Assembly (NCBI GenBank): GCA_000708835.1
Contig: DF237106.1
Span: 22,370 to 86,369, forward strand
DNA: 64,000 nucleotides
Origin: Klebsormidium nitens
Lineage: Eukaryota > Plantae > Klebsormidiophyceae
Reading direction: 5' to 3'
Shown: positions 13,085-42,436 of the stretch, piece after piece
Numbering within the stretch: position 1 is the stretch's first letter
How the letters are laid out: each line of letters opens with the position of its first letter
Program-made: the position numbers and the translations under genes
Notes under the pieces: generated by a model
The model's database searches: none
What the model saw: the letters and a program-made list of their open reading frames with translations, nothing else
Told to the model about the DNA's origin: nothing

Positions 13085-16000
13085 CTACGCACGCGAGCCG
13101 GGAAAATCTTCCCTCAATTCAAGGGCCATCTTCTCGTCCAAACTCCCTCGATCCGCGGCATACTTTGGCGACCCCACCTCTAGGCGGGCCAGCCTTCTCA
13201 TCGCCGCGAAGCGCTCGACGATCAGCACTCCAAAGCCCTTCCTCCGTTCGATGGCTTCCTTTAGCAGCGATCCGACGGTGAACAGGATCCCGAGCAGCGA
13301 GATCGCGATGGACGAGACGAAAATTTCGTCGTCGACGTAGATGCGAGTCGCCCGGGAGCTGCCCAGTATATACAGCGCAGACTGGAAGACCGACTGGGGG
13401 AGCGTCTCCAGCACGGTTTGCAGCAAACTGCGCGCCTCCTGGTAGTACCGAAAACTGAGCGGTTCCCCGCCCACCAAAAGATGCACCCCCAACCGCCCCA
13501 GAATACCCAAGACGTCAAACGCGGGCGTTGCCAACACTCCAAGCGGCCACAGAAGCAAGGTGAGCAGAAAGCGACGCGCGGAGATAAAGCTGCTTTCGCC
13601 GCCCGTTGAGAAGTCGGCGTCTGGCGGGCAGGGGGGCCAGAACCAGGCGACACGGACCCCCTGCGGAAGGGCTTTCCGGTCGCCTTTGCACGCCCAGCTG
13701 TCCGCCACTAGAAGCCCGGACATAAGGAAAGGCCCGGCTATGCACGGTAAGAGAACCCACATCGGCCAAACGCCCCAGACGTCTACCAAGACCAGGATAT
13801 TAAGGGCGACCGACACGGGCATGAACAGGGATGTCAGGACGCCCAGCAGCTCCTTCAGGTTTGCGACAATGCGTGACGTTCCGCCGCGCTCTTTTGGAGG
13901 GCCGGATCGCCGTTTCCGGCGGCACAACGCGGCGACCAATACCACGAGAAGAACGCCGAAGGTCGCCCACGTGACCGCCACCACGAGGACCGCGTTCTCG
14001 TTCTTGCACAGGTTCTTCTGGCGCACGTTTGTATAGCCCACTCCCACGTATGCCGCGCTCCCGGGGCCGAAGTCCAGCTTATCCAGGAAGTCGGTGTCGT
14101 TCAGATAGACGGCCCGTCCGTCCACCAGAAAGTAGTCGTCTCTGACTTGCAAATCCAACCGCCCCTGCATTTCTCCCAGCGTCTCCACCAGGTTCGCCCG
14201 CCTCTCTCGCAGCGACAGCGGAAAGATTTCCGGCGCGCCGACCGGGACGAATTTCGGCGACTCGCCCCGGACCATCACGGCAATCTTCCCCAGGCAAACC
14301 GTTCTTCTGGTCGCCCGCGAGAGTTCGGAACCGGAACCCGTGACGTCGAGAACGCAGCCCTTGGGTGAGAAGCACGACCCCCAGAAACGGATGCTCGTTA
14401 GTTGGACGCCGATCAGGCGGAAGAATTGGCAGGCGGACGGAACGTAGGACAGGTCCGGTTCAGGTGGGGCCTGGTTCAGAGGGAGGGTTTGGGCGTTGAC
14501 CGAAGTCGGTAAGCGAGCTGGTTTGCGAACACCAAATCAAATGCGTCAGGCTTTTCTATAACGTCCGGTGCAATTCTAGCTCATACGGAGTGTTCGAAGC
14601 GAAAAACTTTGTCGAATGCCTAGGTTCTGGTCTTTCCCGGCCCTTTCGTTCCTATGAGCCTGAAATAATCTCTAGGTTCTAGCGTGACGATTGTTGAGGC
14701 CACTTTTCCAGCTTCTTTGTTGGTACCGTGACCAGCGAAACGGCTACCATCAATTGGGACTTTGTTGGATGGCGGGTTGCCGGAAGATGTAATCACGGGG
14801 TCAACCGAAACCCACGTGCATCAGAACGGCAGGCAGCGTGCTGATATGTTCGAAATTCCGCAATCCTTGGCAATCAGAACGGATTTCAAGGCACCAGAAA
14901 GACCGACTCAATCGCGCAAGCTCGTCTCGTCCATTCACCTGGCTCTTGTACGTGAACTGCGCATAGGAGAGGTTCGACATCGCCGCGGCTTCAGGAGGAA
15001 AGAAGCCGTCCAAGCTTGTGTTCCGCAGCGACAGGTACTTGAGCTTCTTCAGACCGGAAAGCTCCGGCGGAATGGGGCCGGACAGCCCAGTGTAGCTCAC
15101 GTTCAACCGGGACAGGTTTGCCAGGTTGCCGAGTTCTGGGGGGATTGGACCAGTGAGTGCATTCTCCTGCAAGTAAAGTATGGACTTGAGATCTGCCGTT
15201 TCTTCTACTTGGCGTGACTCGATCTGAACTGTTGAAGAAGCGTGTCACAAGAGCTCACACCATGAGCCTTGTTCTTGAAATGATGGGCAATCAGCCTGGG
15301 GTTGAGTTTACCGGAAGGTTTGGTTGCTAAACCAGGGTCAGTAATCAGTTTATAGTATGATTTTTGACCAACAATCGCGTTGTAGCTATGTTAAAAACCT
15401 GGTATCTGCTCTCTGCTTGAGTCTGGTTATGATGAGTTTCGAAGCAGTCCGTGACCGACCATGGTTAACCGCCACAAAATCCAGTGGAACCGGGTAGAGT
15501 CCCAGAAGCTGTCCTGAATTCTGCTCCATCTTCGACGAGAAGCAGAGGAGACGTGTCAGACCATACAAACTTGATTACCTAGGGCGTCGGAAAGGGGAGG
15601 CAACTAGCCATAAACACAGAACGTTCAGAGAAGAGAACGTTACGACGAAGCCCTATGTAACCCCCAGTATACACAACTGTGCATAACGGGCCAGGTCTCA
15701 AGCTTCTGCCGGCCCGCTTGTGCGGAGAAGAGCGGCTAAGACAATTGGCAACTTGAAATACGAGTGGCATAGAAGCGACGGATAACAGACAGACGTTAGT
15801 TGCACTTCAGACTCGCAGTCTACCTACCTGCAGGAAAATGATCTGGAGTGACGTCACGGCCCCAAGCTCCCGGGGAATCGAACCGGTCAGGTTATTCTGC
15901 TCGAGGCTGAGGAAGGTGAGGTTCCGCAGGTTGGAAAGCGTGGGGGGTATGGGGCCCTCTAGCGAGTTTGCCGCCAACACAAGAAAGTTGAGCTGAGCGG

Positions 16001-18413
16001 CGGAGCCCAGTTCCGGCGGAATCAGGCCGGAAAGAGAGTTGTCGTACACACTGAGGTGGAAGAGGGCGGGGAGACTCCCCAGGCAGGCGGGGATCGTCCC
16101 GTTGAGAGCGTTGCCTGAGAGGCCCAGAATCTGCAGCCCTTTGGCGTCGCAGAGGTCGGTGGGAATCGGCCCCGAGAACCGGTTGTTTTCGAGGAAGAGG
16201 TAGATCAGCTGCGTCAGGAAAACCAACGGGGTTAGACATACGTGAGCGACGTAATAATTATACTGGCGCCGCTAACAGCGTGGACTTCAAGGGCAATTGT
16301 GTAATCAACGTCAAATGTGTCGAAGAGAGTTCTTATGCTTCTGTCAACCCGACTAGATTTCCTTCCGAACCAGGCGCTAAACACGGGTTTGAGGACAAAA
16401 CAGCTTACGCTTACGCTTACGTGTTGCACAGTTCATTGGCTCAGACCGTTCAAGCCCGTAGCAACTTCTCCTCACGAAAGAGGACTTCTGCTGGTACCAG
16501 CTTAAAGTGGACTAGTACGTTAACTCCTCAAAACCCCACCTGCACTACCACGCTAACGAACCAAAGAACGCATTGAGAACTGCAGCAACCATTCCGGCCG
16601 GCCCGCATAGGAACCCGCTTATGACCAACCCATCCAACCAAGAAGGGGAACGAAAGCGAAAGGCAAAGAGGTGAACGAATATGCAAACGCTGTACCTGCG
16701 TCGACTGGCCGAGTCCCGTAGGGAGCTCTCCCGACAGAAGGTTACCGTTGAGCGCCAATGCCAAAAGGTCGGGGAGCGCGGCGAACCCCGGGGGAAGAGG
16801 ACCGGACAGCTGGTTGAACGGAAGCAAGCAGAATTGGAGGCGCGTCAGAGCCGCAAACTCCTCCGGAATGGAACCCGTCAACTGGTTAAGACTCAGCTCT
16901 AAAAGAAGGAGCTTGGTTAGCGAACCGAGGGAAGCCGGAATAGAACCGGTCAGGTTGTTCCCGTTGAGATAGAGGAACTCTAGTGATTCGAGATTGCCCA
17001 ATTCCGGGGGAATGGAACCGCTCAGCTGGTTGACCTCCAGGCTAAGAGCTCAACCAGGTTCCCAAGCTCCCGGGGAACTTCCCCGGTTAGGTTGTTAAAC
17101 CCCAGGTTTAGAGCAAGGAGGCCGGTTAAGTTCCCGAGCCCAGGGGGAATGGTTCCGGTTAACCCGTTCTCGTCTAGGTAGAGCAGGAGGAGCTCGGGAA
17201 AGTTTTCGGGGCGGGGTATCGGCCCGGAAAGCAGGTTCGTTTTGAGGTTAAGGAAGCGCAAAGCGCTCGGCGTTCCACCCAGGTCGCCAGGAATGGGCCC
17301 CGTCAAACTATTGTTACTGGCGTCCAGAAGCAGAAGCTCCGTCAGTCGGTTGAAGCTCCCGGGAATGGGACCCGTAAAGAAGTTGTTCTGGAGATACAGG
17401 AGTCGAAGCTTGGCGGCATCGCCGAGCTCGAGGGGAATTGCCCCGGTCAGGTTGTTATCGTTGACGGCCAGGACTGCGAGGCTCGGGAGAGCGCCGAGTA
17501 TTCCAGGGAGGGTTCCGCTCAAACCGTTGGAGGAGAGGTTTAGGTTTTCGAGCCGTTGCGCGCGGCCGAGCTCCGGCAAGACTGGGCCAGTCAGGGAGTT
17601 GTTGGCTAGGGCTAACGTGGTTAGGGAAGGGAAACCGGCCGCGTCTACGGGGATCCCTCCGGACAGAAAGTTGTCGCTGATGTCAAGCTCGGTTAGGTTA
17701 ACGAGGTTGCCAAACCCGGAGGGGATCTGCCCGGTGAGCGCGTTCTGAGCCAGAGTGAGTTGCACGAGTGCACGCAACTCTGCTAAAGAGGCCGGAATTG
17801 GGCCGGTGAAGGCGTTCTGGGCGAGGTTAAGCACCGAAAGGTTAGCCAGCAAACCCAACTCCGGTGCTAAGGGCCCTGAGAACCTGTTCCCTGACAGATC
17901 TAGAATTGAGAGGTTGGTTAATTTGGTGACTGCCGTAGGGAAGCCGCCCTCAAGACCATTTTGCGACACATCCAGAACCTGTAACCTGGCCAACTCTGCA
18001 ATCTCTTCCGGAATGGACCCTCTTAGAAGGTTGTCAGACACGTTGAAATACTCGAGCTGACCAAGGTCGCCCAAACTAGGAGCCGCGTTAACCCGGGGTT
18101 CGAACCCTGTCAACCGGTTGCCAGACAAGTCGAGGGCAGTCACGTTCAAAAGGCCCCCGAGAGCCTGGGGGATTTGCCCACTTAACCGGTTGTTGGAAAA
18201 GTCGATGCCAGTGAGGAAACCGTAGTCGCCGAGCTCTTGGGGAATTGTGCCGGTTAGTAGCTCCCCCGACAAGTTGAGAGCGGCCGGGACTCCGAGGGTT
18301 AAGGTCGGGGTTAGCCGGTTGATCTCGACAATGGTTAGGGCTTCTCCTTGGGGAAGCGGACAGGTGGCGATAGCGAGAAGAGTCAGACCCAGCGTAAGGC
18401 GGATAGCGGCCAT
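13085..18413 (-). CDS. LRR receptor-like protein with C-terminal multi-pass XK/Xkr-like membrane domain (~1240 aa); frameshift at ~17041
   Basis: Exons 18413-16696, 16208-15828, 15166-14939 and 14470-13085. Signal peptide MAAIRLTLGLTLLAIATC is followed by roughly 28-30 plant-type LRRs (LxxLxLxxNxLxGxIPxxLG). TM1 plus RRKRR is followed by ~4-5 further hydrophobic segments including LETLPQSVFQSALYI. No kinase domain. The frame breaks inside an LRR near 17041. Confidence 0.85.
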
Positions 18414-20480: not shown

Positions 20481-21825
20481 AGAAAAGAAACAAGAATCCC
20501 GACCCACTTCTTGCTACTTTAATCGGTGGTGCTCCACCCTAACCACCAAGCTAACCCAACCGTGCCCCGGGCGACTCTCGACCCAAGAAAGCTTGTCTCA
20601 AGTTCAACTTCGAAATGTCGACATCAACGTGGGGTCGCGACTGGTCGCAACTGCACTTTTTCAGCAGAGGTCCTTGGTTCGTACCGTGACCTTTTTGGCA
20701 CAATTGGTGCGATCAATCGAAGTTTGCCCCGGGGCGCTTCCTGCGCACCATGCAGCATCCTCGGGGAACAGTGCCTCCTGGGGAAGGGCGGGCCAGTTTG
20801 CCCCGAGGCCCTGAGTCGCTGCAAAAGCCGCCCGGGGACGCAAAGAACTTCTTTCCGGGGGTGCTATGCGCCCCGGTTTACGCCCCCCCAGGCGAACCGC
20901 GCGGCGCTGCCGTGCTGATTTTGTCGGGGGGATCCCTGAATTGTCATGATGATGTGGGACCTGGGGTGACAGGTATCTACTGAACAGTGAACTGTTCTGC
21001 GCTCATCACTTGCTGCTCAGCTGTTCAAAGAAACCAAGAGCGTGAAGAAAGTCGAACTCCACCTCGAAGCAAGAGGAACAGGAGAAAGAAGGAGAAGCAG
21101 CTTGGCGATGCCAGTACCGGCTAGTTGCAGAAAGAAGGGAATGCAATGACAGGTAAGCATTTGTCAGAAGAAGAGTTTACGTGCGCTCTGGCATTTCTTT
21201 GCAATCACCTCAGCTAGAACCTTGCATGTAGCCGGACATGTAGCATCAGAGCAGCAGGCTGCAGAAAGTTCAGCAGATGCATTGTCAATGTCTCATTTGA
21301 GTGACAGCATGCATCATGGTCAAGAGCAGTAGATGCAGTCTAGTGCAATACTCTGTTTCCCTATGGCCGGGGTCTATTGAATCTTGTATCTTGTCTTACC
21401 CTGTTTGACTAGAGGGCCGTCAATGCCTGCCAATCCGAGAAGTGCCGCAATGCTCTTCTATCTTGAGGCATTTTCAAAGCTTCTTTGCGAATGGAAGCAC
21501 AGGATCATGAATCCCCTGTAAGCAACTCTGGTCAAAGAGCTTGGGCAGTCTGGACTTTCAGCTCATTTTGGTGTCATTCAGTCAGGCTGTAAGAGGATTT
21601 GGGGCAGCGGTCTTCAAACCTAACCAGGCTTGGTGCAATGGTCTTAACTTATCCTGAATGAATAACCTCGACGTAAGCACGTGAAGGCAATGTCCAACAT
21701 CTCACCACAGCAAATCCCTGAGATTTTAAGTACAGATGACTATACAGGGCTTCTAGGCAGAGGTAGTGGTTATCTCATGGCTGGCCAAACCAACAATGTT
21801 GGGTGTGTCAAGACGCATGAATATC

Positions 21826-21851: not shown

Positions 21852-22699
21852 CTCCGCCCTCACGTGAGTTTTCTAGTGGCAAAAAGTGGGTTCAGTGGTT
21901 TTCACAGAAGTGCTTTGGAAGTGCTGTCAAAGGCACCTTGCTCTTCTGTGCCACATAATTTGCCTGATCTATGTAGAATCATGCTTTCATCTTCTTTCAA
22001 TGAGACACCTCTGAGACTGGCTGGAAGTGCGTCGAAAACCAACCGGCGCCTTCTCGTAACCAGCGGTTTACCCTCCGCTAAAAGAACTCTTTTCATAGAG
22101 AAGGGTAGGGAACCCTGTTGAGAAATTCTTCAGAAAGCCAACAGGTACTGGTACCTTGTAAGTAACTTACAGGTGTTTCAACTTGCCCTCCCCCTGTTAT
22201 CCCAAACAAGGTGCAACTAACTCCTCGAATCACCAACAACATCTGTTTACTTGGAGGAGCATGTAGTCCAAGACCTGGGCAAGAAGGGTTTGAAAAGTGC
22301 GTATGCTTAGAAAGGGCAGTTCTGGACGAATATTGGGATAGTTTGGCCAAAATCCCAGTCTTCTTGGAACGCCCCACCATCAAATTCATATTCAGGACCC
22401 AACAGATTCCAACCCCCAAATTTGACCAAGTCCATTCCATCTCCTTACAGATATATACTTCTGAACTCGTCAGATTCTCGTTCTGGTGTGCCCCGTACAT
22501 CAACAGGCCCGTCTGAGGAAAGCAGACTGTGGTTGATTTGCACCAGACAGAGTCAAAAACAGACAAGTTCATTCCAGAAGCATGACGTAGAGTCCATGTA
22601 GGCCCCTCCAGACTCAATCCATTCCAACCCACTTCACACTCTCGTACAGGGACCCAGATTACGCGAGCTGTCACCATGAGGGCACAGACACCTGTCACC

Positions 22700-25600
22700 A
22701 TGCACGCTTGGACACCTGTCCTGGTGTTCCTCCTACTAGGCTCTGCTGCCCCACAAGTCTTTGCTGGCTCGGGCGCCTTCGACGGCTCTTCCTACACCTT
22801 TTGCGTGGCCGTACTGTTCAACGCCTCAGCGAGCGACATTGCGCTCATGCAAACAGTTTTCACTGCGGCCAGTCAGGTGACCGTCTGCCATGCTAATCTC
22901 AGGTCTAACCCTCACCTAACCTTGCGTAACCACCTTGCCTGACAATCACAGCTTTTGAACAGCTATCAGACTGGACTAAAGGTGTTTGCTCACATTGTGG
23001 GAGAGGCATAAGGTGTTGCTGTGCTGGCAACCCCGGTTAGTACAGGGCTTCTATGACCACACTTTACCAGGGCGTTTGTTGAGGCAGATTTCTTTAGATG
23101 AGGACCCGCTCCAAAGTTGGTACCCTCCCTAGTCAATCCACCTCTACACCTAATTGAAACACTAAACCCGTAGTTAGGCGCCATTTATGTCTGCCTAGAC
23201 AAGCTTAGACTAAGCTAGCACCTCCACTGTTGGCCGTGAAGCTTCAGAGCGTCCGACTGGTAACCCGGTAACGTTGAGGTCAAAGTCGAGTTAGACCTCT
23301 AGTGCCATGACCTCCTGCATCATCGCCCTGCTTCTAAATCCCTTCTCCGAGATGGTAGTTGGCAGAAGCTTTTGGATCGGTCTGTTTCCTTGAGACTTGA
23401 AGCCCAAAACGGCTGCGAGGGACAAAAGGAGAACTCATCCGTCACCAAATGTCATCGTACAGCTAAACAGGTTGCGCTACCAAAGCATGACCTGGAGCAA
23501 CTCTGTCCCGTTATGCAGGTGTTTAACGATGCAACGGACGGGCAGCAGCAGTTTGGGACGATCAAAATCGTGCCCAACTCTGTGCTGTCAGATGATGCGG
23601 AGTTCTACGTCCACCCGCTCAGCGGCCGCGCTGACCCCCCGACCGCCGGCATCGGGGGAGGGGGACGCTACGGATACAAAGGGGAGGTGAGGCGCTTCGA
23701 TCATAGCGGAGGATTGTTGCAGTGATAGGCGTGATCCAAACTGGTTAGCTGGTACGAAACACTGGCAAGTTTAGACTGTGTTTAGTGACTGTCTGTCAAG
23801 TTTGGTTCAGAGGGGACATCTGCTGTTTGACTTGCGTTGAAAGCTTCAGTAAAGTGGTTGCTTGGCTGGGTTGACACTGGCAAGGACGAATTGCGAAAGG
23901 GCTTCTCATGCAGAGGAAGCTCTAACCAAGCGTCGAAAGCTCCATACTTTTTGATCGTGTTGCGTACGCAAGGCCGAAGCCTGTAAAACACAGCTCGATC
24001 CGTGTACGTAAGCGGAGCCGAACAGCTCTTTCCGAGCCTGCAAACCGCTTTTCCTTTTCTCGCAGCACGTCAATCTTTACTGGCCGGACAACTTTGCGAA
24101 CACGACCGTGGACGAGGGCGCGTTTAGCATCGCCCATGAGATGGGCCATCTAGTGTTTGGACTCGGCGATGAGTATTCGGCGAGCGGGAACACCTCGTGC
24201 GCTGCGGATACAGCTGACGGCAGCCTCTCGTAAGCGACCGCCTTTTCAGTCAACTCCCCTCCTCTGCAGTGTACGCTTGTTGAAAGAAAGAACGCATAGC
24301 AAGATCTGACGGCGTTCGCTGAATTCAGTCGTAGACATGACTTGTATATCCGTGGTACCTGTCTGAAAGAATGCCTAGCAGCATAGAAAAGAGATCCAAA
24401 CAATATCTATTAAAAACTTAACACGCCCCTATCTTTCTTGATAAAGAAAAGCTGGTGTGAGCACTTGGTCAGGCTTTGTGAACCAGTCACGCCCCCCGGA
24501 CATGAGATGAATACCGAGTCTCGTATACATGGCAATCATCTGGTTAGGCAGTTGATTTCGGTGATGTCGATGGCATGTGGTGCTTTTGCTCGACTCACTC
24601 GCAAAGCTTTGGCTGGTGTTAGGTAGAGGAGCAAGCTCTGCCCTTTGCTATTTCTCATCAATTCAAGTCGTCGAAGTTCTCAAATCGGCGGAAGCTTTGG
24701 AGAATCTGCGTTTCTTGTAAGACCTCACATTTCAGACATGTTGAACTTCCAAACCCCAGGTTTACGCTGACCGGAAGAAGTGGGCAAGCTTCATTCGTCG
24801 ATGCGGACGTTTCAACGCTTTAGTTCGTTGCTTTAAACGAATCCAGTCTTCACCTTTTTTCAAACGTGGACAACTTCCTGTCGCGCAGGTTCTGCTTGAT
24901 GGACAAACTTCCTGACGCTCGGCTCGCGCAGAAACGACACCACCGCGCGGCCGTCGCTCAAGGAGTTCTGCGTGCACGACGTGGGGGGCACCTTAACCCA
25001 CGACCCTAACCTCGACACTGACCAGAGCAAATGGCACGCGAACCGCTCCTGTTGGGACACCATCGCAAACCACACTTCCCGCCCGGCGGCCCCGCCAAAA
25101 CGGGGGCAGCTCCCCATTCCTACGGTCCCCCCTCCCTCGGTTGTCAACTTCCCGAGCACCGGTTCTGGGCTGAGTGTAGTGGTTGTGATCGACCGGTCGT
25201 ACAGCATGGATGATGACGACAAGTTTGAGTACGCTAAGGCGGGGGCGATCGCTTATATAAACTCTCTTTCTGAGGGCGACAGGCTGGCGGTGGTTTCCTT
25301 TGTGTGCGGCGCGGGGCGCGACATGGAGCTGACGTCAGTCGACGGGTCCGGCGTCGTCAAGAGCACCGCCAACAGCGCCGTTCAGAACCTGAAACTGGGC
25401 AGCGGAACCGGAATCTCCGCCGGAATCCAAGAAGCGATCGACATCCTCATCGACGCCCCGGTTCGACCCTGCCGGGAGATCATCCTCCTGCTCACCGACG
25501 GCGATTACAACTGCGACGTCCAGCCGACGCGGCTGATCCGGGTTCTGCAAACCGAGGGGATTTCGCTCAACGCGCTCGCGGTCGGAGTGGACTTAACCAC

Positions 25601-26714
25601 GGCCGGGTTAACCGACTTGCGGAACCTGGCGTTCAGCGCGAGCGGGCAGTTCTTCGCGTTTCACACGCCCCTGGCCACTGTGAGCACGTTCCTGGAACTA
25701 GGCGCGCGCAACATCGACAAACGACAAGTGGGCTCGTTGGTGGGTCGGGAGACGTCTACCGGTTCCGCCAACGGAACGATTCCGGTGCAGGTGGGGCCCC
25801 TGGCGATTCTGTCCGAGGTCAACATGACGGAGATTTCCTTCGTACTAGTTTTCAACTCGTCCGTCGCGAATCTGACGGTCCAAGATCCGGTCGGGAAGGC
25901 GGTCCAGGTCACCGGCTACAACTTCACCACGACGTACAGCAACTTTTCGAGCGCCCAGAACTTTACGCTGACAACCAACGCGACGCGGCTGAACCAGTCA
26001 CTGGGTTTGAATACGTCGTACAACCTGACGCCCAACACCCGGGTCGACATCGGGCCAAACTTTGTGGGAATTACCATCTTCCAGCCGGTTCCGGGGATCT
26101 ACAACGTGTCCGGCGTTCAAGTCCCCAACGGAACCGCCAACGCCAGCGCACCCGCACCTGCTCCCGCGCCAAACCGAGCCGGCTCGAGAATCGTCGCGCC
26201 CCTGGTTCCCCAGCTCGACCTCTACGTCTACGGCAAGAACCAGCTCGGCGCGCAACTCGTCGCCTTCTCGCTGCCAAACGGGACGGTGAAAGCGCCAACT
26301 GCTGTCGTCATCGAAGGCAGCCTGCAGTACAATGGCCGGCGGGTGCTCAACGCCGACGTCACGGCTGACGTCTTCTTCCCCAACGGCACGCGCGCAGGCA
26401 GTGTTCGGCTTTTGGACGACGGGAACTACGCGGCAAACAACGACACGTTTCCGAACGACGGGTACTACACCGGGCGCTTTGCGGCGTACGGCGTCCGAAC
26501 GGACGGCGCGTACACGTTCCGGCTGACCGCCCGTTCCGGCGGAAACGCCACGATCTACCCCGGGGAAGCGCTCTTTGCGGGGCGGAGCCCCCCGGCGAGT
26601 GTGGAGGGCGGTGTGCCCGATCTAGTTCGCCAGCAGCTTGTGTCTGTCGTTATCTCCAACACCCCCTATTTTGCCCCGGCAGCCACCCCCCCGCGGCCAC
26701 CTGCTTCCACATGA
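22700..26714 (+). CDS. Secreted CLCA-like protein: zincin metalloprotease + vWA + beta-rich C-terminal domains (~777 aa); +1 frameshift at ~24906
   Basis: Exons 22700-22876, 23519-23686, 24066-24229 and 24889-26714. Signal peptide; HEMGHLVFGLGDEY (CLCA HExxH...DEY); CLMD..EFC..HD....Q....RSCWDTI; vWA MIDAS DRSYS and LLTDG; LLDDG...NDGYYTGRF..DGAYTFRLTA resembles the CLCA C-terminal motif. Many NxS/T sites and no C-terminal TM. Confidence 0.85.
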
Positions 26715-28064
26715 GCAAAGTTTTGCTAAGCGTGCCGTTACTCGCCTTTAGGTCAGGTGTTGAATCCTGATTTTGACAGCATGTGTTAAAAAACGTAGGT
26801 GTCGAGGTATGGGACGCCTTTCTGCTGCGCTAAATTGGCGCTCAGACAGCTGGTCAATTGTTGCGTCCAAGTGAAGTCAGATAGTCAATTAAAGTTTGAT
26901 ATGTATATTTGTGAGGATGGTTTGGTAGGCCGGGCGAACGAACGAGTCTTCTTTAGGGGCAATATTTTCTCGATGGAAAGATGAGAAAGTTGATACAATA
27001 CGTCACCACAAATATGTTCGTTTTGTTGCTAGTCGTTCAGATTATGACGGTGGTGCGCTCGCGGCGAGCTGCAGAAAGGTCTATTTAATTTATTGACGTG
27101 AGTCAGGGAGGTGGTGGCCTTGACACTTACATAAGGCCCTACGAAATAGGCCCTGCACTTACGCCGTTCTTCTTCTAGGTTTGAAACCTATACACAAAGA
27201 GTAAGCTCCAAGTGAGGAATTGCAGTTCTCCAACACAATCAAGTAAAGTCGCGTGTCGCCTAGAAGGAAGTGCAGCAAACGGCTCAATTTTGTAAGTACA
27301 TAACCCCGCCTGCTCTAGTATCTGATGCATGCAACCAAGCAGAATCACAAGCGTCCATTCTTCGCAATCATGATGTTTTTGTATGTATGTGGCCGCACCT
27401 TTGGAGTGAGGATGCTATGCAAGCATCAGATGCATAAAACCAGTTGGCCGGAAGAATGGTAAGCCAATCTTTGAATGCAACATTTGAATTAACCATTTGA
27501 AATGTCGCACTCTTGTCTCTCTCAAAGTCTCGTACTGACTTTCCACCAAGATGAAGGGAGCGCCTCGCTCAGTCTCCCTTCTTTTAACTACTGAAGGCCG
27601 GACATTCAGAATCGTTCAAGCTGCCAACGGGAGGAACTCGTACGGTCCTCGTAAACATGCGAGTCCCCTCTGAAAGCAGCTGCTTGTTAGTACACTGAGA
27701 CGGAATCAAAAGTTGAGTCATTTCAAAAACGTATCCACATAAGGGATCAACGACGTACAGCAGAATTGGGCCGTCAATATTGGCAGGCTTTCTTCTATCC
27801 AACCGTAACTGTGGTAGCCTGCTCTTTACTGCAGACTGCATGTTCGGCTGTGGGCTCGGGCCCGGCCTGCCCCATCTATATTTTGTTAAGTGTACTCACA
27901 AGTGTGACTACAATACGCATCACTATACGCTTAGGCTGTCAGACCCCCAAGATGCATCAAACGCAATGAACGCTCTCAGTTAGCCCGTCGATGATCGCCA
28001 GAATTCATTCACCAAAATGTTTTGTTGACTGCGCGCGCAAGACAGGGTAGTCCCGACGAAGGTT

Positions 28065-28205
28065 GCGCCCAGGGATCCGTCTCTACCGGTAAAAAACGCT
28101 CACCATTACACCGTCGGTGGTCGCCGGAATGTGGCGCGGACAGGTAGCCGTGACGGCGGTCGTGCTTCGAGACCCCGCCCGGCAGCCCTTAAGCTTCCCG
28201 TGTCT
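28065..28205 (+). pseudogene. Decayed duplicate of exon 2 of the downstream beta-lactamase-like gene
   Basis: Shares TTACACCGTCGnTGGTCGCCGGAA, CGTGACGGCG, CCCGGCAGCCCTT, GCGCCCAGGGATCC and CGTGTCTG with 30850-30972, but with indels. Confidence 0.7.
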
Positions 28206-30204
28206 GTTTGAAGGCTTCTGCTCATGAGATGAGAGTGTGAATTTTCCAATGTGACCGGAGTTTGAACGCCCACGTATAAGCGTGCAAGCAGACCCTGTGG
28301 TTAGAAATGCCGAGCAGCCTTGAAAGCTCTTGTGCGTCGGCAGATAAGCAGGTTCTCGGATCGACGAGTCTTGTTAAGAAGTTAGTGCGCCACGATCTTC
28401 TAGTTACTATTCCTTGATCACGAGACTCTCACCGAGGTCAGCGGCAATCGTCGTCACCAGCATGCAGGGGATTCGTCGTTTGTTATACTTTTGGGTTTGT
28501 GGCTCAAACAACTTTGACAGCTTAACGTGCCCTGCCCACTCTAAGCCTCGCGCTGGACGTGACGCAATTGCATCTTTTATGACGTTATAGCAGTCCTCTT
28601 GCCTATGAAATCTTCTTTCGGCTAGACCAAAAAGGTAGCCAAGTGTTACTAGCTGTTCTCAGATAGCTGATCTTACGTTGACGTAGCTATTGGGGTCGCC
28701 TTTGGACGTCATCATTGCCGTGTGTCTGGGGCAAGACCAGCAGGCGGGCTTACACAGCAGCCGCGCGCGCTTTTGACTTCTGATTGTCTTACAATCTCAT
28801 CAACGGCAGCGGATTGTACATTCGAGATTTCACGAGGTTATCTGGCGACGTTATCACGACGTTCTCAAACTCCAGCGCATCATCAGCAAACGTCCACCGA
28901 TCGTCAACACCCAGACGTTCGTATTAGCGCCAGCTCAAAGCAAAGTAAGAAAGTGCGGAAATATAAGCCTGATGTCTTGCTCCGAGCGAAAAGAAGGCAA
29001 AAATGGCATGAACTCGATCCGTTGGGGCTCGATTATTCGGTGGACGATCTGAGTCTGCTTTTGGTCGAGCCCCTTCCGTATCAAACCAAAAGTGGGCTGA
29101 CCGCCTCTATTGCACCCGCCAGGGGATGTTTTTACGCTTCAGCGGAATGCGCCCTATTCAACGGCAACAGGACGTTCTTACCAGTCCCATTAAAAAAGAA
29201 TGATAATTTCGTGTTACCATGAGATCTTCCCCGCGCGTGAAAGCTATGCAATTGCTGAGGTTGATGAAGAGAAATCGCAGGATCAATTCAGCTTAAAATG
29301 CCGTTTAAAGTGGAGATCGACGGCCAAAGCGCCTTTTGAAGATCAGTATACGTAGACCTCAGCAGATTGGTCAGAGTTACAAACCCGAGAAACTTTTCCA
29401 TTCTAAGTAATGTCACGAACGACGCTTGACGTTCTAGTCAGCCGGCAATAAGATGGGCTTTACCGACTTACTTCGTCACGAGTTTTCCTTGTAAGTATAT
29501 ATGTACAATAGTTATCACACGTACTGTCTTGCTTATCGGATGCTGCTCTCTATTGGGAAGGGCATACGGTCGCGGCAAAACTCCGGAGCGGAACGTTTAA
29601 CCAAGCACTCGAATTAGAGGTATCAACGGTTATGGTTGAGGAAGCTAGCTACCTTCACTCTGCATGTATCTTTGAGCAGCCTTTAGCTATCCGCTGCTAC
29701 CACAAACCAGATACGCACAATGTCATCCTGCTTATAAGGGTCATTCTTGCCGTGCTACCTGCAACAAAACCAGCATTCAATCTCAGGTGACGGCTTCCTC
29801 TCTATCATACTTCGGTCCAGATATCCCCAAACCTGCCCGGTGTGGTCTCAAAATGGTCATTTTAAGGACCTACGACCGAAACATCGTTCAGAAGCGCAAA
29901 CGAATGTTTTCGGGTAACCTAGCGGAAATACTTACCGCAGATTTTAGGTTATGCTGCTGTGTAGACTCTCGCTATCGAGCACTTGAAATTGGATGATCCA
30001 GCGCCTTGCTCTGAGTTCGAAGCTGAGAGCGCGAGAACAGAGCAAGAACGGAGTTTTGAGTCCGGCCTGGAACGTTTGCTTCATGAGTGACTTGCTTCGC
30101 TTTTGCAACGCTTCCCACATCTCCGCTTTCAAGCTTCCCACGTTTCCGTCCCGCTGAGTGAGCGGACCGCACCCGTTGTGCTCTGCCGTCGCCCGTTCCG
30201 CAGA

Positions 30205-33200
30205 ATGGCTGCCACGTGGCGTCTGCGCAGGGCACTCCCGCTGCTTCTGTGCCTTGTCTCAATGCCCGGCTCGTTCTGCGACGGGCGGGCACGAACCCCC
30301 GTGCAGCAGGCAGGACAACTAGACACGGGAGAAGAGGCATCCGCCCTCTTGGAAAGCGTTCCCGGGTATCTTGCAAGCGTGCTTTGCGACGGTAAGGCGT
30401 CAAGAACTTTTCTTTTAGAGCTTTTCTTGCTCCAGAATGAAGGGGCATGCAGAGGAGAATTGGATGACCTCGCTCACAGAAAGCCAGGGCAGCTCATTAC
30501 GTGTGACGCAATCACAGCTAGTTGACGTCTTAATTTCCCGAACCAACGGACCTTGTTTTCAGTGATTCCTTCATCGCGAACAAGGATAGGATGGATGACG
30601 TTTTGGTTGGAAAATCTGCTGTCTCATCCTGCATGCAATTCCTCAGATCACCAAAGTATAAGTATCGATCTTTGAAATCAGCCTTGCATCCATCCCCCTC
30701 GAAATTGTGTTTTATGCAACTCAGTATTCGCTCCGTTTACTGCAGGCCTGTTTATCTCCGACCGCACCCTGGCCAGCCTTCTTTCCAGCGAAGGATGCCT
30801 CCTCGGTTGCGCGCTCCTGCCAGAGTTGCTGGCGACCAACGCGCTCAGTTACACCGTCGATGGTCGCCGGAAGTCGGTAACCGCGCGCGCGGGACACGTG
30901 GTCGTGACGGCGACTGCGCCCAGGGATCCCTCCCGGCAGCCCTTCTCGTGTCTGGTGAAGACCTCGGCTCAGGTAGGAATAAAAGGCTCACGAAAACCCG
31001 GTTTGAGACTGCGTTCGAGTCTTTTGTTAACTCAGGTCTGAAACTCTGAGGCGATGTACTCAGAGCAGGTCTACTTTTGTCGAAATTTTGCTGGCAAGTT
31101 AGACGAGATTGGGGTGCTGGGAGTTGCGCAACCCTTTAGCGGTTAAGAAGCTTTTCCGCTTGGCAGTTCCGAAAAGGGACCAGAGAAGTCAAACCGCTCT
31201 TCTTGTTTGTTTGACGTCTTCTGCGAAGGCCCAAGTCAGTAAAACTTTGACAGCGCAACAACAATAAATGCGAAACCTTCTCGTCTAATCTTTCGCCGTC
31301 TTCACCCATCAATCGAAACCCGTTACCTCCTCTTCTTCTTCCGGTCTGGCCTTGTTGCTGCAACATTTTGCAAAGCTCAGCTCCACGTTTGCGTCCGTCG
31401 CTGGATTGGATTTCCAATCTTCCGAATCGAAATTCAAGCGCCCAGAGAGTGTGACGTCACGGGCGGTGCGCGCGCGCAGGTCGGCCCGGTGGTTCGTCCC
31501 GTTTACCGTTCCAACGGGTCGCCATATCGGCGCTTCGATTGGCCAGAGGCGCGCGGCGGCACCTCTTCCGAGTTCTCCGGCGTGGACTACGGGCGCCTCG
31601 CGGCCGCGATCGCGCCGTTTTTTGCCGATCCAATGGCGCCCAACTCGGTCGCCAACGCCACAGAGACACGCGCTGTGGTCGTGATTTACCAGGTGAGGGC
31701 TGCCAACGTACACCTGTTTGGAAATAAGAATCTGGCGACAATCTGGCGACAATCTGGCTTACGCCTTCTCCACGAAGACGCCGAAACCTGTATCTCTGGC
31801 CCCTGAGAATGCGCGGCGCGTCTGTGGGTGACCCGGATTGTCTGATCGGCTCAGCCGACGTATGTGGGCACACTCAAGGATTGTGTCTCTTCTGATAAAC
31901 TGTGTGAGCAGATAATGCTTACAGGAAACTTCTTATCTATCGTTTCTCTGGCTTGTCCTTTTGAATTGCAAGTTTGATCCTTCATCTGGCTGTGGTTGCA
32001 CGACCGATCTTCATCTTAAGAACTCCTCGCTTTATTTGCAGCAAGTATTCGGAATCCTTCCACGGGGTAGACGACTGGCTAAGCCTTCACGAATGTGTTG
32101 CGATTTCTTTGATGCTAACTTTCCCTCGTCCAATTGCAGGGCAAAATCATAGCGGAGCGGTACGCAGAAAGCCTCGGCTTCTTTGAGACGACACCGCTGC
32201 TCGGGTGGTCAATGGGAAAGAGCCTGACGTCCGCGCTTGTAGGGCTGCGCATCGGTGACGGTAAGGGGCTCACGTGTTTTGTGTGTCATCCGGGAAACTA
32301 GACCGTCTTTACAGTTTCAGGGCCACGTATCTGTCAAGTTACCACGCGATGTTTGTCATGCGGTTATTCGAAACATGTTCGTTCATCGCGTTGAAGAATG
32401 TTCTCCGCAATCTGTGTTCGGCAAACCCGTGCAAGGGTTATCCAAAACCTGCAATCGGTCAGTATAGTTCTGGAGGCAAACTCAATGTCATATTTGAGTT
32501 TTCTTTACCCGAAACACGCAGGGGCCCTGAATCTCACAGACTTGGCGAATCCGCGCGCCTGGAGTCCCGCGGAAGTGGCGGAACGGAACATCACCGTGGC
32601 GGACCTGCTCCATCAGACAAGCGGAATCCGGTGGAACGAGTCGTCTTTGCCCGGTTCGGACGCCAACAGGGTCACGTTCGGCCTCGCGCAGAACGACACC
32701 GAAATGTTCGTTGTCGCCCGCCCTCAAGCTGTGCCCGCCGGTGAGTGACTTGCGACCTTTCGGATTCGGAACCTTCTGCTTTTCTCAAAGTGTCCGGTTC
32801 CGTCTGTCTTTCGGCCGCTTCCGTCCGCAAGCGGAACGATCAAATAAATTTTGACGAGAAGTTCGTCGCCGCCCGCCGGTGAGTGATTAGATCGAGGCTT
32901 CCGGCGTCCCGTTCCGCCCGCATTCCGGCCGCTTCTGTTCGCACTCAGAATGATCGCTAAGAGGACAACGAGAAGCTTTCTTAGCAGCGCAACTTAAGCT
33001 GTGCCCGCCCGGTGTGTGACTAGAATGAGGATTCCGGCGTCGGCATGTCGGCCGCTTCTGTTTCGTTTCCGTTCGCATTCTGGCCGCTTCTATCCGCACT
33101 CCGAATGATTGCTCAGAGACGTTTCGTGGCACCGCACCTCAAGTTGTGCCAGCGTGTGGGTTATTGGAACTCGGCGTCCGCGCGATCGCTAGCTAAGTGT

Positions 33201-35146
33201 CCGGTTCCCGTCCGCATTACGGCCACTCCGGTCCTCCTTAAATTGAAGACAGCCTGTGTACCGGTTTGCAAGTCAGTCGGCCGGAACTCGAAGATGTGGG
33301 TTTCCGAACGGTTACGGAAGCTTTCGTGCGCAGTCAGCTTTAACGATCAAAGGATAGCAAGACGTTCTGCCCGCCACCCTCTAGTTAAGCGCGCAGATTG
33401 TCGGTTTCGTCCGCATTCCGGCCACTTCCGTCCGCCGTCGATTGCAAAAGACGATTGCAAAAGACACAAACTTCTGGGCGTAAAGCCCGCGAGCTGTGCG
33501 CGTGGGGGGGTGGAATCTGTTCGCGTGTTTGGCACTGGCCGCATCCGTGCTGCCCATTGGCGCCTTTCGCAGATCTTTGACACTTCCTTACAGTCCGTTC
33601 GATATCTTTTGACCATCCCTTCCGTCCGTTACCAAACGTTGACCGTCCCTGCAGGTTTGCAAAGCGTCCAGGATTGTACTTCGACGATCCTCGACTTTTA
33701 TCCGCAGTTGGCGAAACCGTCTGTGGCGAACCGCTTGGACCGGACCAAGTTTTCTCATTGCTTCCTTCCGCTTGCCAACACAGAAGGTTCCAAAAAAAGC
33801 AAACTCCATCGAATTGCTTCAGATCGGAACAGCTTCGCCATTTCTCGAATTTAAGTTCTATCTTCAGTTCTTGCGCCATCTGAGAAGAATAAGGATCTCC
33901 GTTTTGAGTCAGCGGTCGCTTCGGAGCTCTCTCCGTGTACCCTGATTTTGCTGCACAAACTCCTCATAAGGCGGCCGCCAGCTTACCATAAGAGTGCCCC
34001 CCTTCCGCAGGCACCCGGTTCGACTACAGCACTGGGAACGTCCAACTGCTGCAAGGTCAGTTGCGCCGCAGCTTCCGCGGGAACGACGTAGCGTATTGGA
34101 GCTACCCCTATAATCGCCTGTTCAAGCCGATCGGCGCGCGATCCTTCAAGCTCAGCTTTGACGGCGTCGGTACCATTCAGGTAATCCGCACATTATGACA
34201 GCTCTACAACCCTGCAGATTCCTTTGTTACGAACAGGGGACGTTAGCCACAGATGGCGTGCATTACAACAGAGCTTCCGCCTTTGTGATAGTTGTGCGTC
34301 TTGAATTGCGCGAACTTCCTGAATCTCTAGACATAGCATACACCCTAGCGAGACTGTTCATCTTATGCTTCTCGAGGCATTCAAATCTGCCCCATTGGAC
34401 ATTCGGCTTCTTAAGCCGTTCGGCTTTGGAGTCTCAGCCCGTTTCCATAAATCTCGAATTGCAATCGTACTCGAGATGCATCCACAAAAAGCAGGCTCTT
34501 TAGCTGTCTGGCGGGCTCCTAAAGAAGAAGTTTTGCTGTCGCGGCCAATCCGCGGCGTCAACGTCAAAAAGCGCAGGCTTCGCTCAAAACTGATCATTCA
34601 AACCCGTTCATATACTCCCTCTCAACAACAGGACGAAGGCCCATCAGTCTGCACCAATTTCTAATTTAGTTAAACTAGTGAACTAGTTTGGGGCGTTTCT
34701 GTGGGCAGGCCAGCTCCAGCGTATACGCGACCGCGCGCGACTGGGCGCGCCTGGGACAGCTGTACCTGCAGGACGGCGTCTGGGACGGCACGCGCATTCT
34801 GCCACGTGGCTGGGTGCGCTACTCGCGCACGCCCTCCTCGCCCTCCGTACGACACGTGTGCGGCCCAGTGTCGCTCGCACTGGGCCTCTGCGCACCGTAC
34901 GGCGCGCTCTGGTGGGTCGCCCCGCTCAAGGGCGTCTCCGCGGCCGCGTACGCGGCGGAGGGTTTTGAGGGACAGTACGTAGTGGTCGTGCCGGACCAAG
35001 AGCTTGTGGTAGTGCAACTAGGGTGGGCGAGAAACGATGCCCTTGACGACTACTATGCGGGGGTCCTGGTGCGCCACGTCAGTGAGGCGGTGCCACGTGG
35101 CAAAAGCCCACGTGCGAAGAATACTCCAGGTTTTAGTCTCCCTTAG
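30205..35146 (+). CDS. Secreted serine hydrolase, beta-lactamase class C / NylB-like family, 7 exons, ~524 aa
   Basis: Exons 30205-30391, 30746-30972, 31480-31692 (an acceptor at 31380 is also in frame), 32140-32260, 32522-32740, 34011-34180 and 34709-35146 join in frame. Motifs: GWSMGKS (SxxK), DLLHQTSG, RFDYSTG, ATARDWARLGQLYL, AEGFEGQYVVVVP. Signal peptide present. Confidence 0.88.
32722..33260 (+). repeat. Degenerate ~135-145-bp tandem repeats (about 4 units) carrying copies of the exon-5 splice donor
   Basis: CAAGCTGTGCCCGCCG/GTGAGTGACT at ~32725 recurs as GCCCGCCGGTGAGTGATT (~32870), TAAGCTGTGCCCGCCCGGTGTGTGACT (~32995) and CAAGTTGTGCCAGCGTGTGGG (~33140). Most units are followed by TTCCGGCG...CATTCCGGCCGCTTCT-like text. 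Confidence 0.75.
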
Positions 35147-39774: not shown

Positions 39775-40084
39775 TGCCTTGGCTTGTTGAAACTTGAGTC
39801 GGTGATATGGTTTAAGGAGCCCGGGCCCACGACTGGGGGCTGCTTTCTACTGCGGCTAGAATTTCGGGTTCTAACCACGCCGCTTTGCTGTCTGCACATG
39901 CAAACGTCCAGATGCTTACAAGCTTCAAATATTGTTTCAAGTTCAAACTCTGAGTCTTTGTTCAGACTTCAGGTCCGGAGGAAATCTCAAGATCAGGCCG
40001 TGTGTCTTGCTCGCAAAATAATCAGGTTGACTGCATACCCGCGGCATTTCTATAAGTTGACTGCCAGCAAAATGTCGGCGCCTT

Positions 40085-40140
40085 GCAGAATTCCGCGCGG
40101 CTTTGCCGTCCGAGTCGCGGCCGGCTTGCGGTCCGGCGCG
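40085..40140. promoter_or_regulatory. Conserved GC-rich upstream motif of F-box copy B
   Basis: GCAGAATTCCGCGCGGCTTTGCC...TCGCGGCCGGCTTG lies ~310 nt upstream of the ATG, within a flank homologous to 37367-37960. Confidence 0.55.
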
Positions 40141-40774
40141 GCTATTCTGGACGATTAGTTCTGATTCCCATTCGGTTCTGCTTCTTCTGGTTCCGCTTCT
40201 TCCAATCGGGAGATAGGCGCTGGATGCACGCCGACTCACCCTCGTGACTCACCGCGTGCCCATCTTTGGCAAGTCGCCATTTTTTGAGCTGTGCCAGCTG
40301 GGGATCGGACGGTTGAGAACTGAGCAAAGCATTAATGCCCGAACCCAAGAAGAGGTGTTAGCGCGCCAACCGTGGCGGCTTTGTGCGCGTTCTGCTTCCA
40401 ATCTGGCTCAAATGTTAGAAGACCTTCTTCTGACGACTTCTGAGGTCTTCCAACAAAAAGAATGCTGAAAGAAGCATGAAGAATGGTGAACGAACCAGGT
40501 ATGCCTAGGTTTAGACTGTGGGTTAAGAATCTAACCAACTTGCCAAAGATGGGACCCCGGTATAACAGCCACGAGACCACGATGGAAACGCCGGCCGCCA
40601 ACATGTCGGCAGTATTGGCAAGCAGCACCGGCCACATACTAGTACTCGAACCGAGCCGCAGTAGGTCAGTAATACAACTTTGGGCGCTATCAAAAGCGCG
40701 CGTCGCCTCATGACGAGCCACCACTCTATGTGGGCATCGCACGACTCATGGCAGGAGGGCTATGATGGTGTACC

Positions 40775-41264
40775 NNNNNNNNNNNNNNNNNNNNNNNNNN
40801 NNNNNNNNNNNNNNNNNNNNNNNNNNNNNNNNNNNNNNNNNNNNNNNNNNNNNNNNNNNNNNNNNNNNNNNNNNNNNNNNNNNNNNNNNNNNNNNNNNNN
40901 NNNNNNNNNNNNNNNNNNNNNNNNNNNNNNNNNNNNNNNNNNNNNNNNNNNNNNNNNNNNNNNNNNNNNNNNNNNNNNNNNNNNNNNNNNNNNNNNNNNN
41001 NNNNNNNNNNNNNNNNNNNNNNNNNNNNNNNNNNNNNNNNNNNNNNNNNNNNNNNNNNNNNNNNNNNNNNNNNNNNNNNNNNNNNNNNNNNNNNNNNNNN
41101 NNNNNNNNNNNNNNNNNNNNNNNNNNNNNNNNNNNNNNNNNNNNNNNNNNNNNNNNNNNNNNNNNNNNNNNNNNNNNNNNNNNNNNNNNNNNNNNNNNNN
41201 NNNNNNNNNNNNNNNNNNNNNNNNNNNNNNNNNNNNNNNNNNNNNNNNNNNNNNNNNNNNNNNN
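40775..41264. other. Assembly gap (490 N)
   Basis: Run of N. Confidence 1.
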
Positions 41265-42436
41265 GCGCAAATACTTCTAACAGGGTTTTGGAAGGCCAGT
41301 GCCAAAGCAGGAGCTAGTAGTGGTGTAACCGGGCTGGGTAAGCTTTCGTCAACGCTCATGAAACGCCAGGATTTTTGGTGCCGTGAATCAGCAGGGGCGT
41401 GCCACGTACGTGGCAAGCCCACATGAGACCAAACTGTGTGTACTTAGACTTCCTCAGAAGAGACAGAGGATGGGGCCCTGCTTCTCATTATTTTTGCTTG
41501 CTTATGGCTTTAACCCGGGTCCTGATCAGGTCACTAGGTTCGAAAACCTCGATATTTGATTGGCTTTTTTATTTGCCAATTGCCTGCTACTAGTGGTAGC
41601 TGAAAGGAAAGTCGTACAGCAGGTCATCCGTAGTCGAACCATCTTATGAGATGACACTGGCAGATTTAAGATCAATGAATGCTTATACGTGGCGTTCGGT
41701 TGGATAGCCCTGGGAGCAGAGCGTCGTTTTGTAGAGCCCATCGATAAGTCGACCCCTGGCACTTGGATGCGCAAACTGCACCGAAAGTGCTGCCGAAAAC
41801 ATATGTCAAGGTTACCTCCGACTACAGATCTGCAACATCATTTGCGCGGTACGCCATCAAATACGACTTTTGCACTTTCTTGCGAACGAGAAACTCACAT
41901 GACGCTCAAATGGGAACGGCGATTTGTGAGTCTATTGCCGTCATGGTAGTAGACCTATGAAAACGTGCCGGACTCTGCGCTGAAGTTCGCGGCTGCGACG
42001 GATTGCAAGTTCTTCATGACCTGCCGGCCAGAGTGATCCAGCATGAAGGTGTGGACACCCTTCCCGATGCAATGATGTACACAGTTCCCAGCTCACAGGC
42101 CCCTTTCTTCCTGTAAAGCCAATCCAAGAAGAGCATATTCAAAGCCCATAAGCAGGTGGCATTCAAAGAGACGGCCTTTGGTCAACTGCGTTCTTGAAAC
42201 CAGGTTGGAGTGCCTTCGTGTCGTTATAAATCCCTCCTATCTTTGGGACTAAGCATCACGTACGAAATTGAAGGCCCTCACGTCGTCGTCACTTTAATCT
42301 CCAAACACAAAATGACCCGGAGCACAATCTCGTTGCTGACGTTCCGGAGTAACAATTCCGAATTCTCTCGAGAGTCTCTGGAAGATCGGAACAGCGACGT
42401 GGCACTCAACTGCGTCTTTTGCACGCAAGCTCACCG

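Follow-up and report, generated by a model that had tools for sequence, protein, structure and literature searches.

The window analysed here is a stretch of 64,000 nucleotides (nt) from the genome of the streptophyte alga Klebsormidium nitens (GCA_000708835.1, contig DF237106.1, positions 22,370 to 86,369; positions below are counted from its first letter). On its forward strand it carries a spliced gene that relates to the CLCA proteins, in which a metalloprotease domain is followed by a vWA domain. We consider it probable that this is a nuclear, transcribed algal gene of bacterial CLCA-superfamily origin, represented in the window by a recently frameshifted copy, with an intact paralogue elsewhere in the genome. 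The original prediction, made from the DNA letters alone, had described the architecture as animal-type and offered horizontal gene transfer (HGT) or loss from land plants as its origin. All of the motifs that it listed occur on the forward strand where it had placed them, but an extra A at 24905-24907 keeps them from being read in one frame. The closest relatives, moreover, are bacterial rather than animal, with ~40% identity over the protease and vWA domains.

RNA contigs carry both the splice joints of the gene and a 5′ exon, which shows that it is transcribed and spliced and places its start ~1.6 kb upstream of the coordinates given earlier. Three GT..AG coding introns are removed at the joints 22876|23519, 23686|24066 and 24229|24889 in Logan contigs of three RNA-like runs from three studies, where RNA-like denotes contigs with intron-skipping joints, the library type being a guess. 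The gene had been correctly predicted to contain introns; its 5′ exon had been missed. This exon, which ends at 21152, is marked by RNA contigs that extend upstream of 22650 to 21119-21148. Exon bounds come from the DNA itself and from a tblastn search of the window with the K. nitens paralogue (P0002), and the coding part of exon 1 comprises 22676-22876. We also observed a 13-codon upstream open reading frame (21108-21149) in the 5′ exon, the TGA of which overlaps the in-frame ATG of this exon (21146); this upstream frame may lower translation from 21146 to the benefit of the ATG at 22676. Run X4 additionally has low-depth contigs (4-8 vs 50-64 for the exons) over parts of all three introns (22880-23432, 23738-24093 and 24518-24726), which could be unspliced pre-mRNA or DNA carried over in that library.

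The reading frame breaks just after the start of exon 4. Exon 3 ends in TC, which joins the first G of exon 4 to give ..SLS-FCLMD in frame 2, where the paralogue reads ..NLSFCLMDNY... Exon 4 therefore opens in frame 2 (FCLMD), whereas its conserved reading is frame 0, from 24906 to the TGA at 26712-26714; in tblastn of P0001 and P0002 all homology past 24906 (NF.LGSR..EFCVHD.., the vWA domain and the remainder) lies in frame 0. At the break the window has ATGGACAAAC and the orthologue L001 has ATGGAC-AAT, the extra A being absent from both L001 and the intact paralogue. The extra base is real in the DNA and mRNA of this strain, since neither a DNA contig (24034-25029) nor the RNA contigs of any of the three studies (24889-26800) show a gap or a differing letter against the window. 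Owing to this 1-nt frameshift, the window gene as it stands cannot encode the full architecture. Its predicted product of ~217 amino acids from ATG 22676, or ~228 from ATG 21146, stops short of the end of the protease domain and has neither the vWA domain nor any later part.

We compared the window exon by exon with L001, the syntenic orthologue (~84% nt identity), on a Logan genomic contig from SRR23617307 in which colinearity extends over ~20 kb. Synonymous divergence (dS) is 0.50 and nonsynonymous divergence (dN) 0.068, a dN/dS of 0.135 overall; the ratio is 0.147 over the 602 codons downstream of the shift and 0.046 in exon 2. Exon indels other than the frameshift are all multiples of three. 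With the paralogue as outgroup, unique residue changes number 17 in the window and 13 in the orthologue (p 0.58), so that the two lineages have evolved at equal rates. The low dN/dS and the equal rates indicate that the break is recent and that this copy was, on these substitution patterns, constrained until very recently. Exons of neighbouring genes (14120-18413 and 28149-34824, including a leucine-rich-repeat receptor gene at 13085-18413) are colinear with L001 at 72-90% nt identity, and from this conservation of the flanks SRR23617307 is judged to be a related Klebsormidium-like alga. Its contig is useful for comparative checks across the whole window.

The intact paralogue P0002 is 60% identical to the window gene and served as its full-length proxy. 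Its locus (L002; GCA_000708835.1, DF236973.1) has the same three intron positions, from which we infer that the introns predate the duplication. In NCBI the paralogue is named 'calcium-activated chloride channel family member 4', so that a CLCA label already existed for this alga. The NCBI model (L002 3001-4016) places an 87-residue N-terminal extension, encoded in three small upstream exons, ahead of the Met that precedes the signal peptide; this extension looks like an annotation artefact or 5′ untranslated region (UTR) read as coding. Since the window copy is frameshifted, functional work would be better done on the intact paralogue or the orthologue.

Along the window gene, the ATG at 22676 is followed by a hydrophobic N-terminal leader, and bacterial leaders end at the same AG.G column (alignment A4). 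The zinc motif HEXXHXXXGXXDEY is present as HEMGHLVFGLGDEY, and in relatives the conservation of its H, E, H, D, E and Y is 90% or higher, as is that of the Met of the Met-turn CLMD (24893-24904), which is in phase with exon 3. EFC (24963-24971), THD (24996-25004) and SCWDTI (25047-25064) follow, with THD..Q..SCWDTI spanning 24996-25064. The predicted metal ion-dependent adhesion site (MIDAS) of the vWA domain was borne out by a Pfam VWA match and the DRSYS sequence, and an Ala-Pro linker, APAPAPAP, lies at 26148-26171. The heavy glycosylation that had been proposed is consistent with the density of N-glycosylation sequons, which is 3.5 per 100 residues in the alga against a median of 0.66 in bacterial homologues (about five times denser). 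Pfam and NCBIfam searches of exons 1 and 2 taken singly gave zero matches. The features are collected in Table 1.

Table 1. Features of the CLCA-like gene, by position in the window.
Feature	Position	Strand	Basis or remark
5′ exon (UTR)	21023..21152	+	loose ends of RNA contigs X4, X13 and X14 map to 21119-21148; GTAAGC donor follows
Exon 1	22650..22876	+	ATG 22676, signal-peptide-like leader, mature start GSGAFDG..; tblastn of P0002, joint 22876|23519 in three RNA runs
Exon 2	23519..23686	+	N-terminal beta/alpha part of metzincin domain (VFNDATDGQQ..); tblastn of P0002 and RNA joints
Exon 3	24066..24229	+	active-site helix with HEMGHLVFGLGDEY (24135-24176); tblastn of P0002 and RNA joints
Exon 4, last coding exon	24889..26714	+	joint 24229|24889 in three RNA runs; tblastn of P0001 and P0002
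Frameshift site, AAA run	24905..24907	+	one base more than orthologue and paralogue (both MDNY); DNA alignment with L001
Cryptic AG	24930..24931	+	with exon 3 donor, frame 0 restored and 14 residues including Met-turn lost; AG absent in L001
End of protease domain, EFC..THD..Q..SCWDTI	24963..25064	+	TIGR00868 positions 253 onward; near-invariant columns in alignments A1-A4; CLCA1 structure paper
Premature TAA	25007..25009	+	in the frame holding start codon and HEXXH; frame 2 reading
vWA domain, MIDAS DRSYS 25191-25205	25176..25661	+	Pfam VWA E 1.4e-13; directly after protease domain
Beta-sheet-rich region	25770..26400	+	bears most of exon 4's 21 N-x-S/T sequons; strands in paralogue model
DDG..NDGYY..Y motif, 'choice-of-anchor X' type	26415..26489	+	common to bacterial relatives; in region covered by animal CLCA models

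The G+C content of the window falls to 0.39 at 40001-42000 and is ~0.5-0.55 in the rest.

The gene is most closely related to a large family of bacterial proteins. An exhaustive HMMER search with the mature part of the paralogue returned 5516 proteins at E ≤ 1e-3, of which 108 reach E ≤ 1e-30. The top matches are ~40% identical (36-42%) over residues 20-515, that is, the protease and vWA domains, with E values of 1e-102 to 1e-80, and tblastn to Pyrinomonadaceae genomes reached E 1e-98. Among the closest relatives every source name obtained is bacterial (Pyrinomonadaceae, other Acidobacteriota, Myxococcota, Planctomycetota, Verrucomicrobiota and Actinomycetota). A profile word search, in which the 8000 candidates with the largest number of shared words were scored, brought up K. 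nitens as the only named eukaryote and no land-plant protein. All 57 sampled relatives match TIGR00868 (best 5e-40) and 56 match VWA, with alignments to TIGR00868 that reach profile position ~690; 11 of the 57 match Pfam CLCA (PF08434) at E ≤ 0.01 (best 1.9e-9). The motif model NF041940 is matched by 47 of the 57, and weakly by the paralogue.

These bacterial proteins, annotated as 'VWA domain-containing protein' (e.g., HEX8352299.1 and HEX8500284.1 from Pyrinomonadaceae metagenome-assembled genomes (MAGs), and MEN0060836.1 from Myxococcota), share with the algal proteins their domain order, the ~40% identity noted above and a signal peptide at the same alignment column. They also share a series of motifs: the AG.G mature N-terminus, DATDGQ, HExxHxxxGxxDEY, CLMD, EFC, NHD, SCWETI, DRSGSM and DDG..DGxYS. 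They differ in being intronless, in having few N-glycan sequons and in their C-termini, which are sorting or repeat modules (DUF11/TIGR01451 repeats, type IX secretion system (T9SS) tails, FG-GAP, PPC), whereas the algal proteins have Ala-Pro linkers and a short Pro-rich C-terminal tail. The sorting modules vary among bacterial members, which may have DUF11 repeats, a T9SS tail, JDVT-CTERM or FG-GAP. Across bacterial loci L003-L049 the family is patchily distributed over at least nine phyla, and these phyla are not monophyletic in the tree; on that pattern, transfer of the family among bacteria is likely.

Two unrooted trees, neither including an animal CLCA sequence, place the algal proteins among bacteria. 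In the first (115 sequences, protease and vWA domains), three Klebsormidium sequences form one clade (100) inside a starred 40-row bacterial and metagenomic set (99), nearest to a Myxococcota MAG (87). In the second, which includes 40 named bacterial genomes, the algal clade falls in a starred set of 20 rows (97/99) that is mostly Acidobacteriota. The nesting of the algal clade in bacteria, the introns shared with the paralogue, the dense sequons and the Ala-Pro linker together favour an old transfer from a bacterium to the alga, followed by domestication. HGT is thus the better of the two origins first proposed, and ancient inheritance with land-plant loss the less supported one.

The assignment to CLCA holds at the superfamily level only. 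Pfam CLCA, for which a failure to match the N-terminal domain had been set beforehand as evidence against the prediction, has no match on any window exon and falls short of significance on the paralogue (E 0.35, with 10.7 bits where the cut-off is 25.6). The animal CLCA model TIGR00868 (hCaCC subfamily) matches exon 4 at E 3e-15 (55 bits, profile positions 253-441) and the paralogue at E 1e-20 (73 bits, positions 254-549), scores that are significant as homology and do not signify subfamily membership, for which the cut-off is 900 bits. A sequence search of the PDB found vWA matches only and no full-length CLCA chain. All of our structural results are for models of the paralogue, standing in for the window gene. 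The AlphaFold2 model (predicted local distance difference test (pLDDT) 82, predicted template-modelling (pTM) score 0.84) has template-modelling (TM) scores of 0.62-0.64 over 598-644 residues with three chordate CLCA clusters in the ESM Atlas and fits an Acidobacteriota cluster there equally well. The vWA domain superposes on the CLCA1 VWA crystal structure 6PYO with a TM score of 0.87 (root-mean-square deviation 2.5 Å). In these terms the CLCA architecture that had been proposed stands as a superfamily resemblance, and it is not encoded by the frameshifted window gene.

The modelled protease domain (pLDDT 92) is structurally nearest to ADAM8, ADAM22, ADAM17, ADAM10, ADAMTS5, ADAMTS13 and snake-venom metalloproteases (Z 10-11.6), and next, in a range down to Z ~6, to CpaA, ulilysin, archaemetzincin (AmzA), Amuc_1438, OgpA and the T. 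ramosa IgA protease (Z 5.8). The same set of structural neighbours has been reported for the metallohydrolase (MH) domain of CLCA1 in a cryo-EM preprint (10.1101/2025.10.18.683246), which defines HEXXHXXXGXXDEY, the Met-turn and a Cys/His second-zinc site. By motif order, the algal HEMGH..GDEY, CLMD and EFC..THD correspond to these three elements. The Met of CLMD would be the equivalent of CLCA1 Met238, and EFC..THD..Q..SCWDTI, by motif, the counterpart of the Cys250/His255 second-zinc site and helix alphaC.

The window gene and the animal proteins (CLCA1, 'CLCAsins') have in common HEXXHXXXGXXDEY, the Met-turn, EFC..TH(N/D), a MIDAS vWA domain directly after the protease domain, a beta-sheet-rich (BSR) domain and DDG..DGxYS, and the paralogue model suggests a shared MH-VWA-BSR-C-terminal beta domain fold. 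In contrast to the animal proteins, however, the alga has ~88 residues with 3 Cys from HEMGH to SCWDTI, where CLCA1 has a 118-residue disulfide-rich insertion or thumb (alphaB-alphaC; 10.1101/2025.10.18.683246). Overall sequence similarity is low, as the PF08434 and TIGR00868 scores illustrate, the alga offers no TMEM16 or mucin context, and the window gene lacks one uninterrupted coding frame. The exon with HEXXH also weakly matches M64 and M6 models. M64 igalysins share the HEXXHXXXGXXDEY motif and the metzincin fold and act near O-glycosylated regions, but Pfam M64 (PF09471) on exon 3 is below its gathering score (16.4 bits vs 26), the structural Z of 5.8 compares with 10-11.6 for the ADAMs, and M64 proteins are without the vWA or BSR architecture.

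Other explanations of the break, and of the origin of the gene, have to be weighed against this evidence. Were the extra A a sequencing or assembly error or a rare variant, the gene would be intact and functional, and it is true that homopolymer indels are common assembly errors and that the rest of the gene is fully open and under purifying selection; we regard this as very improbable, since the site is covered without a gap or difference by the DNA contig and by contigs of three RNA-like runs from different studies. Partial rescue of the frame through the cryptic acceptor 24931|24932 or a +1 ribosomal shift, which would yield a secreted vWA protein whose protease is altered or crippled, is improbable. 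In its favour, splicing from the exon 3 donor to the AG at 24930-24931 would keep the right phase, the orthologue has no such AG, and the 1.8 kb downstream are still open. Yet no contig shows this AG in use, 24889 being the sole acceptor in the three RNA contig sets, and an open downstream frame is expected anyway after a recent break. There is no known +1 shift signal at GAC-AAA-CTT, for which reason a programmed +1 frameshift was rejected.

As for origin, the match to TIGR00868 and the agreement of domain order and global fold with chordate CLCAs would also suit an ancient eukaryotic CLCA that animals have as well and that land plants and most other eukaryotes have lost. We find this quite improbable given the ~40% identity to bacterial proteins against 23-24% to the human CLCA1 VWA domain, the non-significant Pfam CLCA score, the position of the algal clade inside bacterial sets and the lack of any other named eukaryote in the profile search. 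That the nearest relatives are bacterial could further be put down to bacterial contamination of the assembly, the chance of which is negligible: four spliceosomal introns of the gene are spliced out in RNA, the flanks with their intron-bearing neighbouring genes are colinear with a contig of another alga, and the paralogue has the same intron positions. These observations exclude contamination.

Several considerations nevertheless weigh against a bacterially derived and recently broken gene, the reading that we prefer. Pfam CLCA fails to match, as described above. The nesting in bacteria rests on midpoint rooting and on the gradient of identity, and support for the Myxococcota MAG as sister is weak (87; 88/71), a long branch being involved. 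The evidence on the frameshift consists of assembled contigs, so that a minor isoform is possible, as is a minority allele that lacks the extra base, and all of the runs may come from one cultured strain. Finally, the algal and bacterial subfamily is known from sequences and models alone.

Under the preferred reading, the gene would be a member of a large and mainly bacterial family, whose secreted multidomain proteins make up the prokaryotic side of the CLCA superfamily. Four parts characterise these proteins: a metzincin (HEXXHXXXGXXDEY, Met-turn), a vWA domain with a MIDAS, a beta-sheet-rich domain and a beta domain with DDG..DGxY. Soil bacteria (Acidobacteriota- or Myxococcota-like donors) are the most likely source of the algal genes, the acquisition preceding the split of two Klebsormidium lineages. 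After transfer the genes would have acquired spliceosomal introns, a signal peptide of eukaryotic type, dense N-glycosylation sequons and Ala-Pro linkers, and they would have been duplicated. To judge from homology, the intact form may be an extracellular zinc endopeptidase, probably ligand-binding through its vWA domain, that cuts glycosylated wall or mucilage proteins. In the window copy, a recent 1-nt insertion between the Met-turn and the remaining protease domain would leave only the truncated product, and the copy is best read as newly inactivated and still expressed.

CLCA proteins have been reported absent from plants, fungi and amoebae, and bacterial CLCA homologues have been explained as animal-to-bacterium transfers (Lenart et al., 2013, PMC3650047). 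Our full-text literature search on CLCA in Klebsormidium or streptophytes found nothing relevant, only papers on the ClC-a chloride channel. A transcribed, intron-bearing CLCA-like pair in a streptophyte alga, grouping as it does with a diverse bacterial family, bears on both the reported absence from plants and the animal-to-bacterium view (PMC3650047), and the large bacterial family weakens the idea that CLCA proteins originated in animals. For the window locus itself the message is more modest, the copy being frameshifted. The findings supply a further instance of a gene for a secreted glycoprotein-type protease passing from a bacterium to an alga, here in a lineage close to where land plants arose. 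More tentatively, and with slightly less than even confidence, we propose that Klebsormidium holds the first documented plant-lineage members of the CLCA superfamily, obtained from Acidobacteriota-like soil bacteria and refitted with introns, a signal peptide, sequons and linkers like those of arabinogalactan proteins, and that the window copy is a paralogue being lost. On this reading the large bacterial family also points to a bacterial origin of the CLCA architecture and not, as was proposed in 2013, to an export from animals to bacteria.

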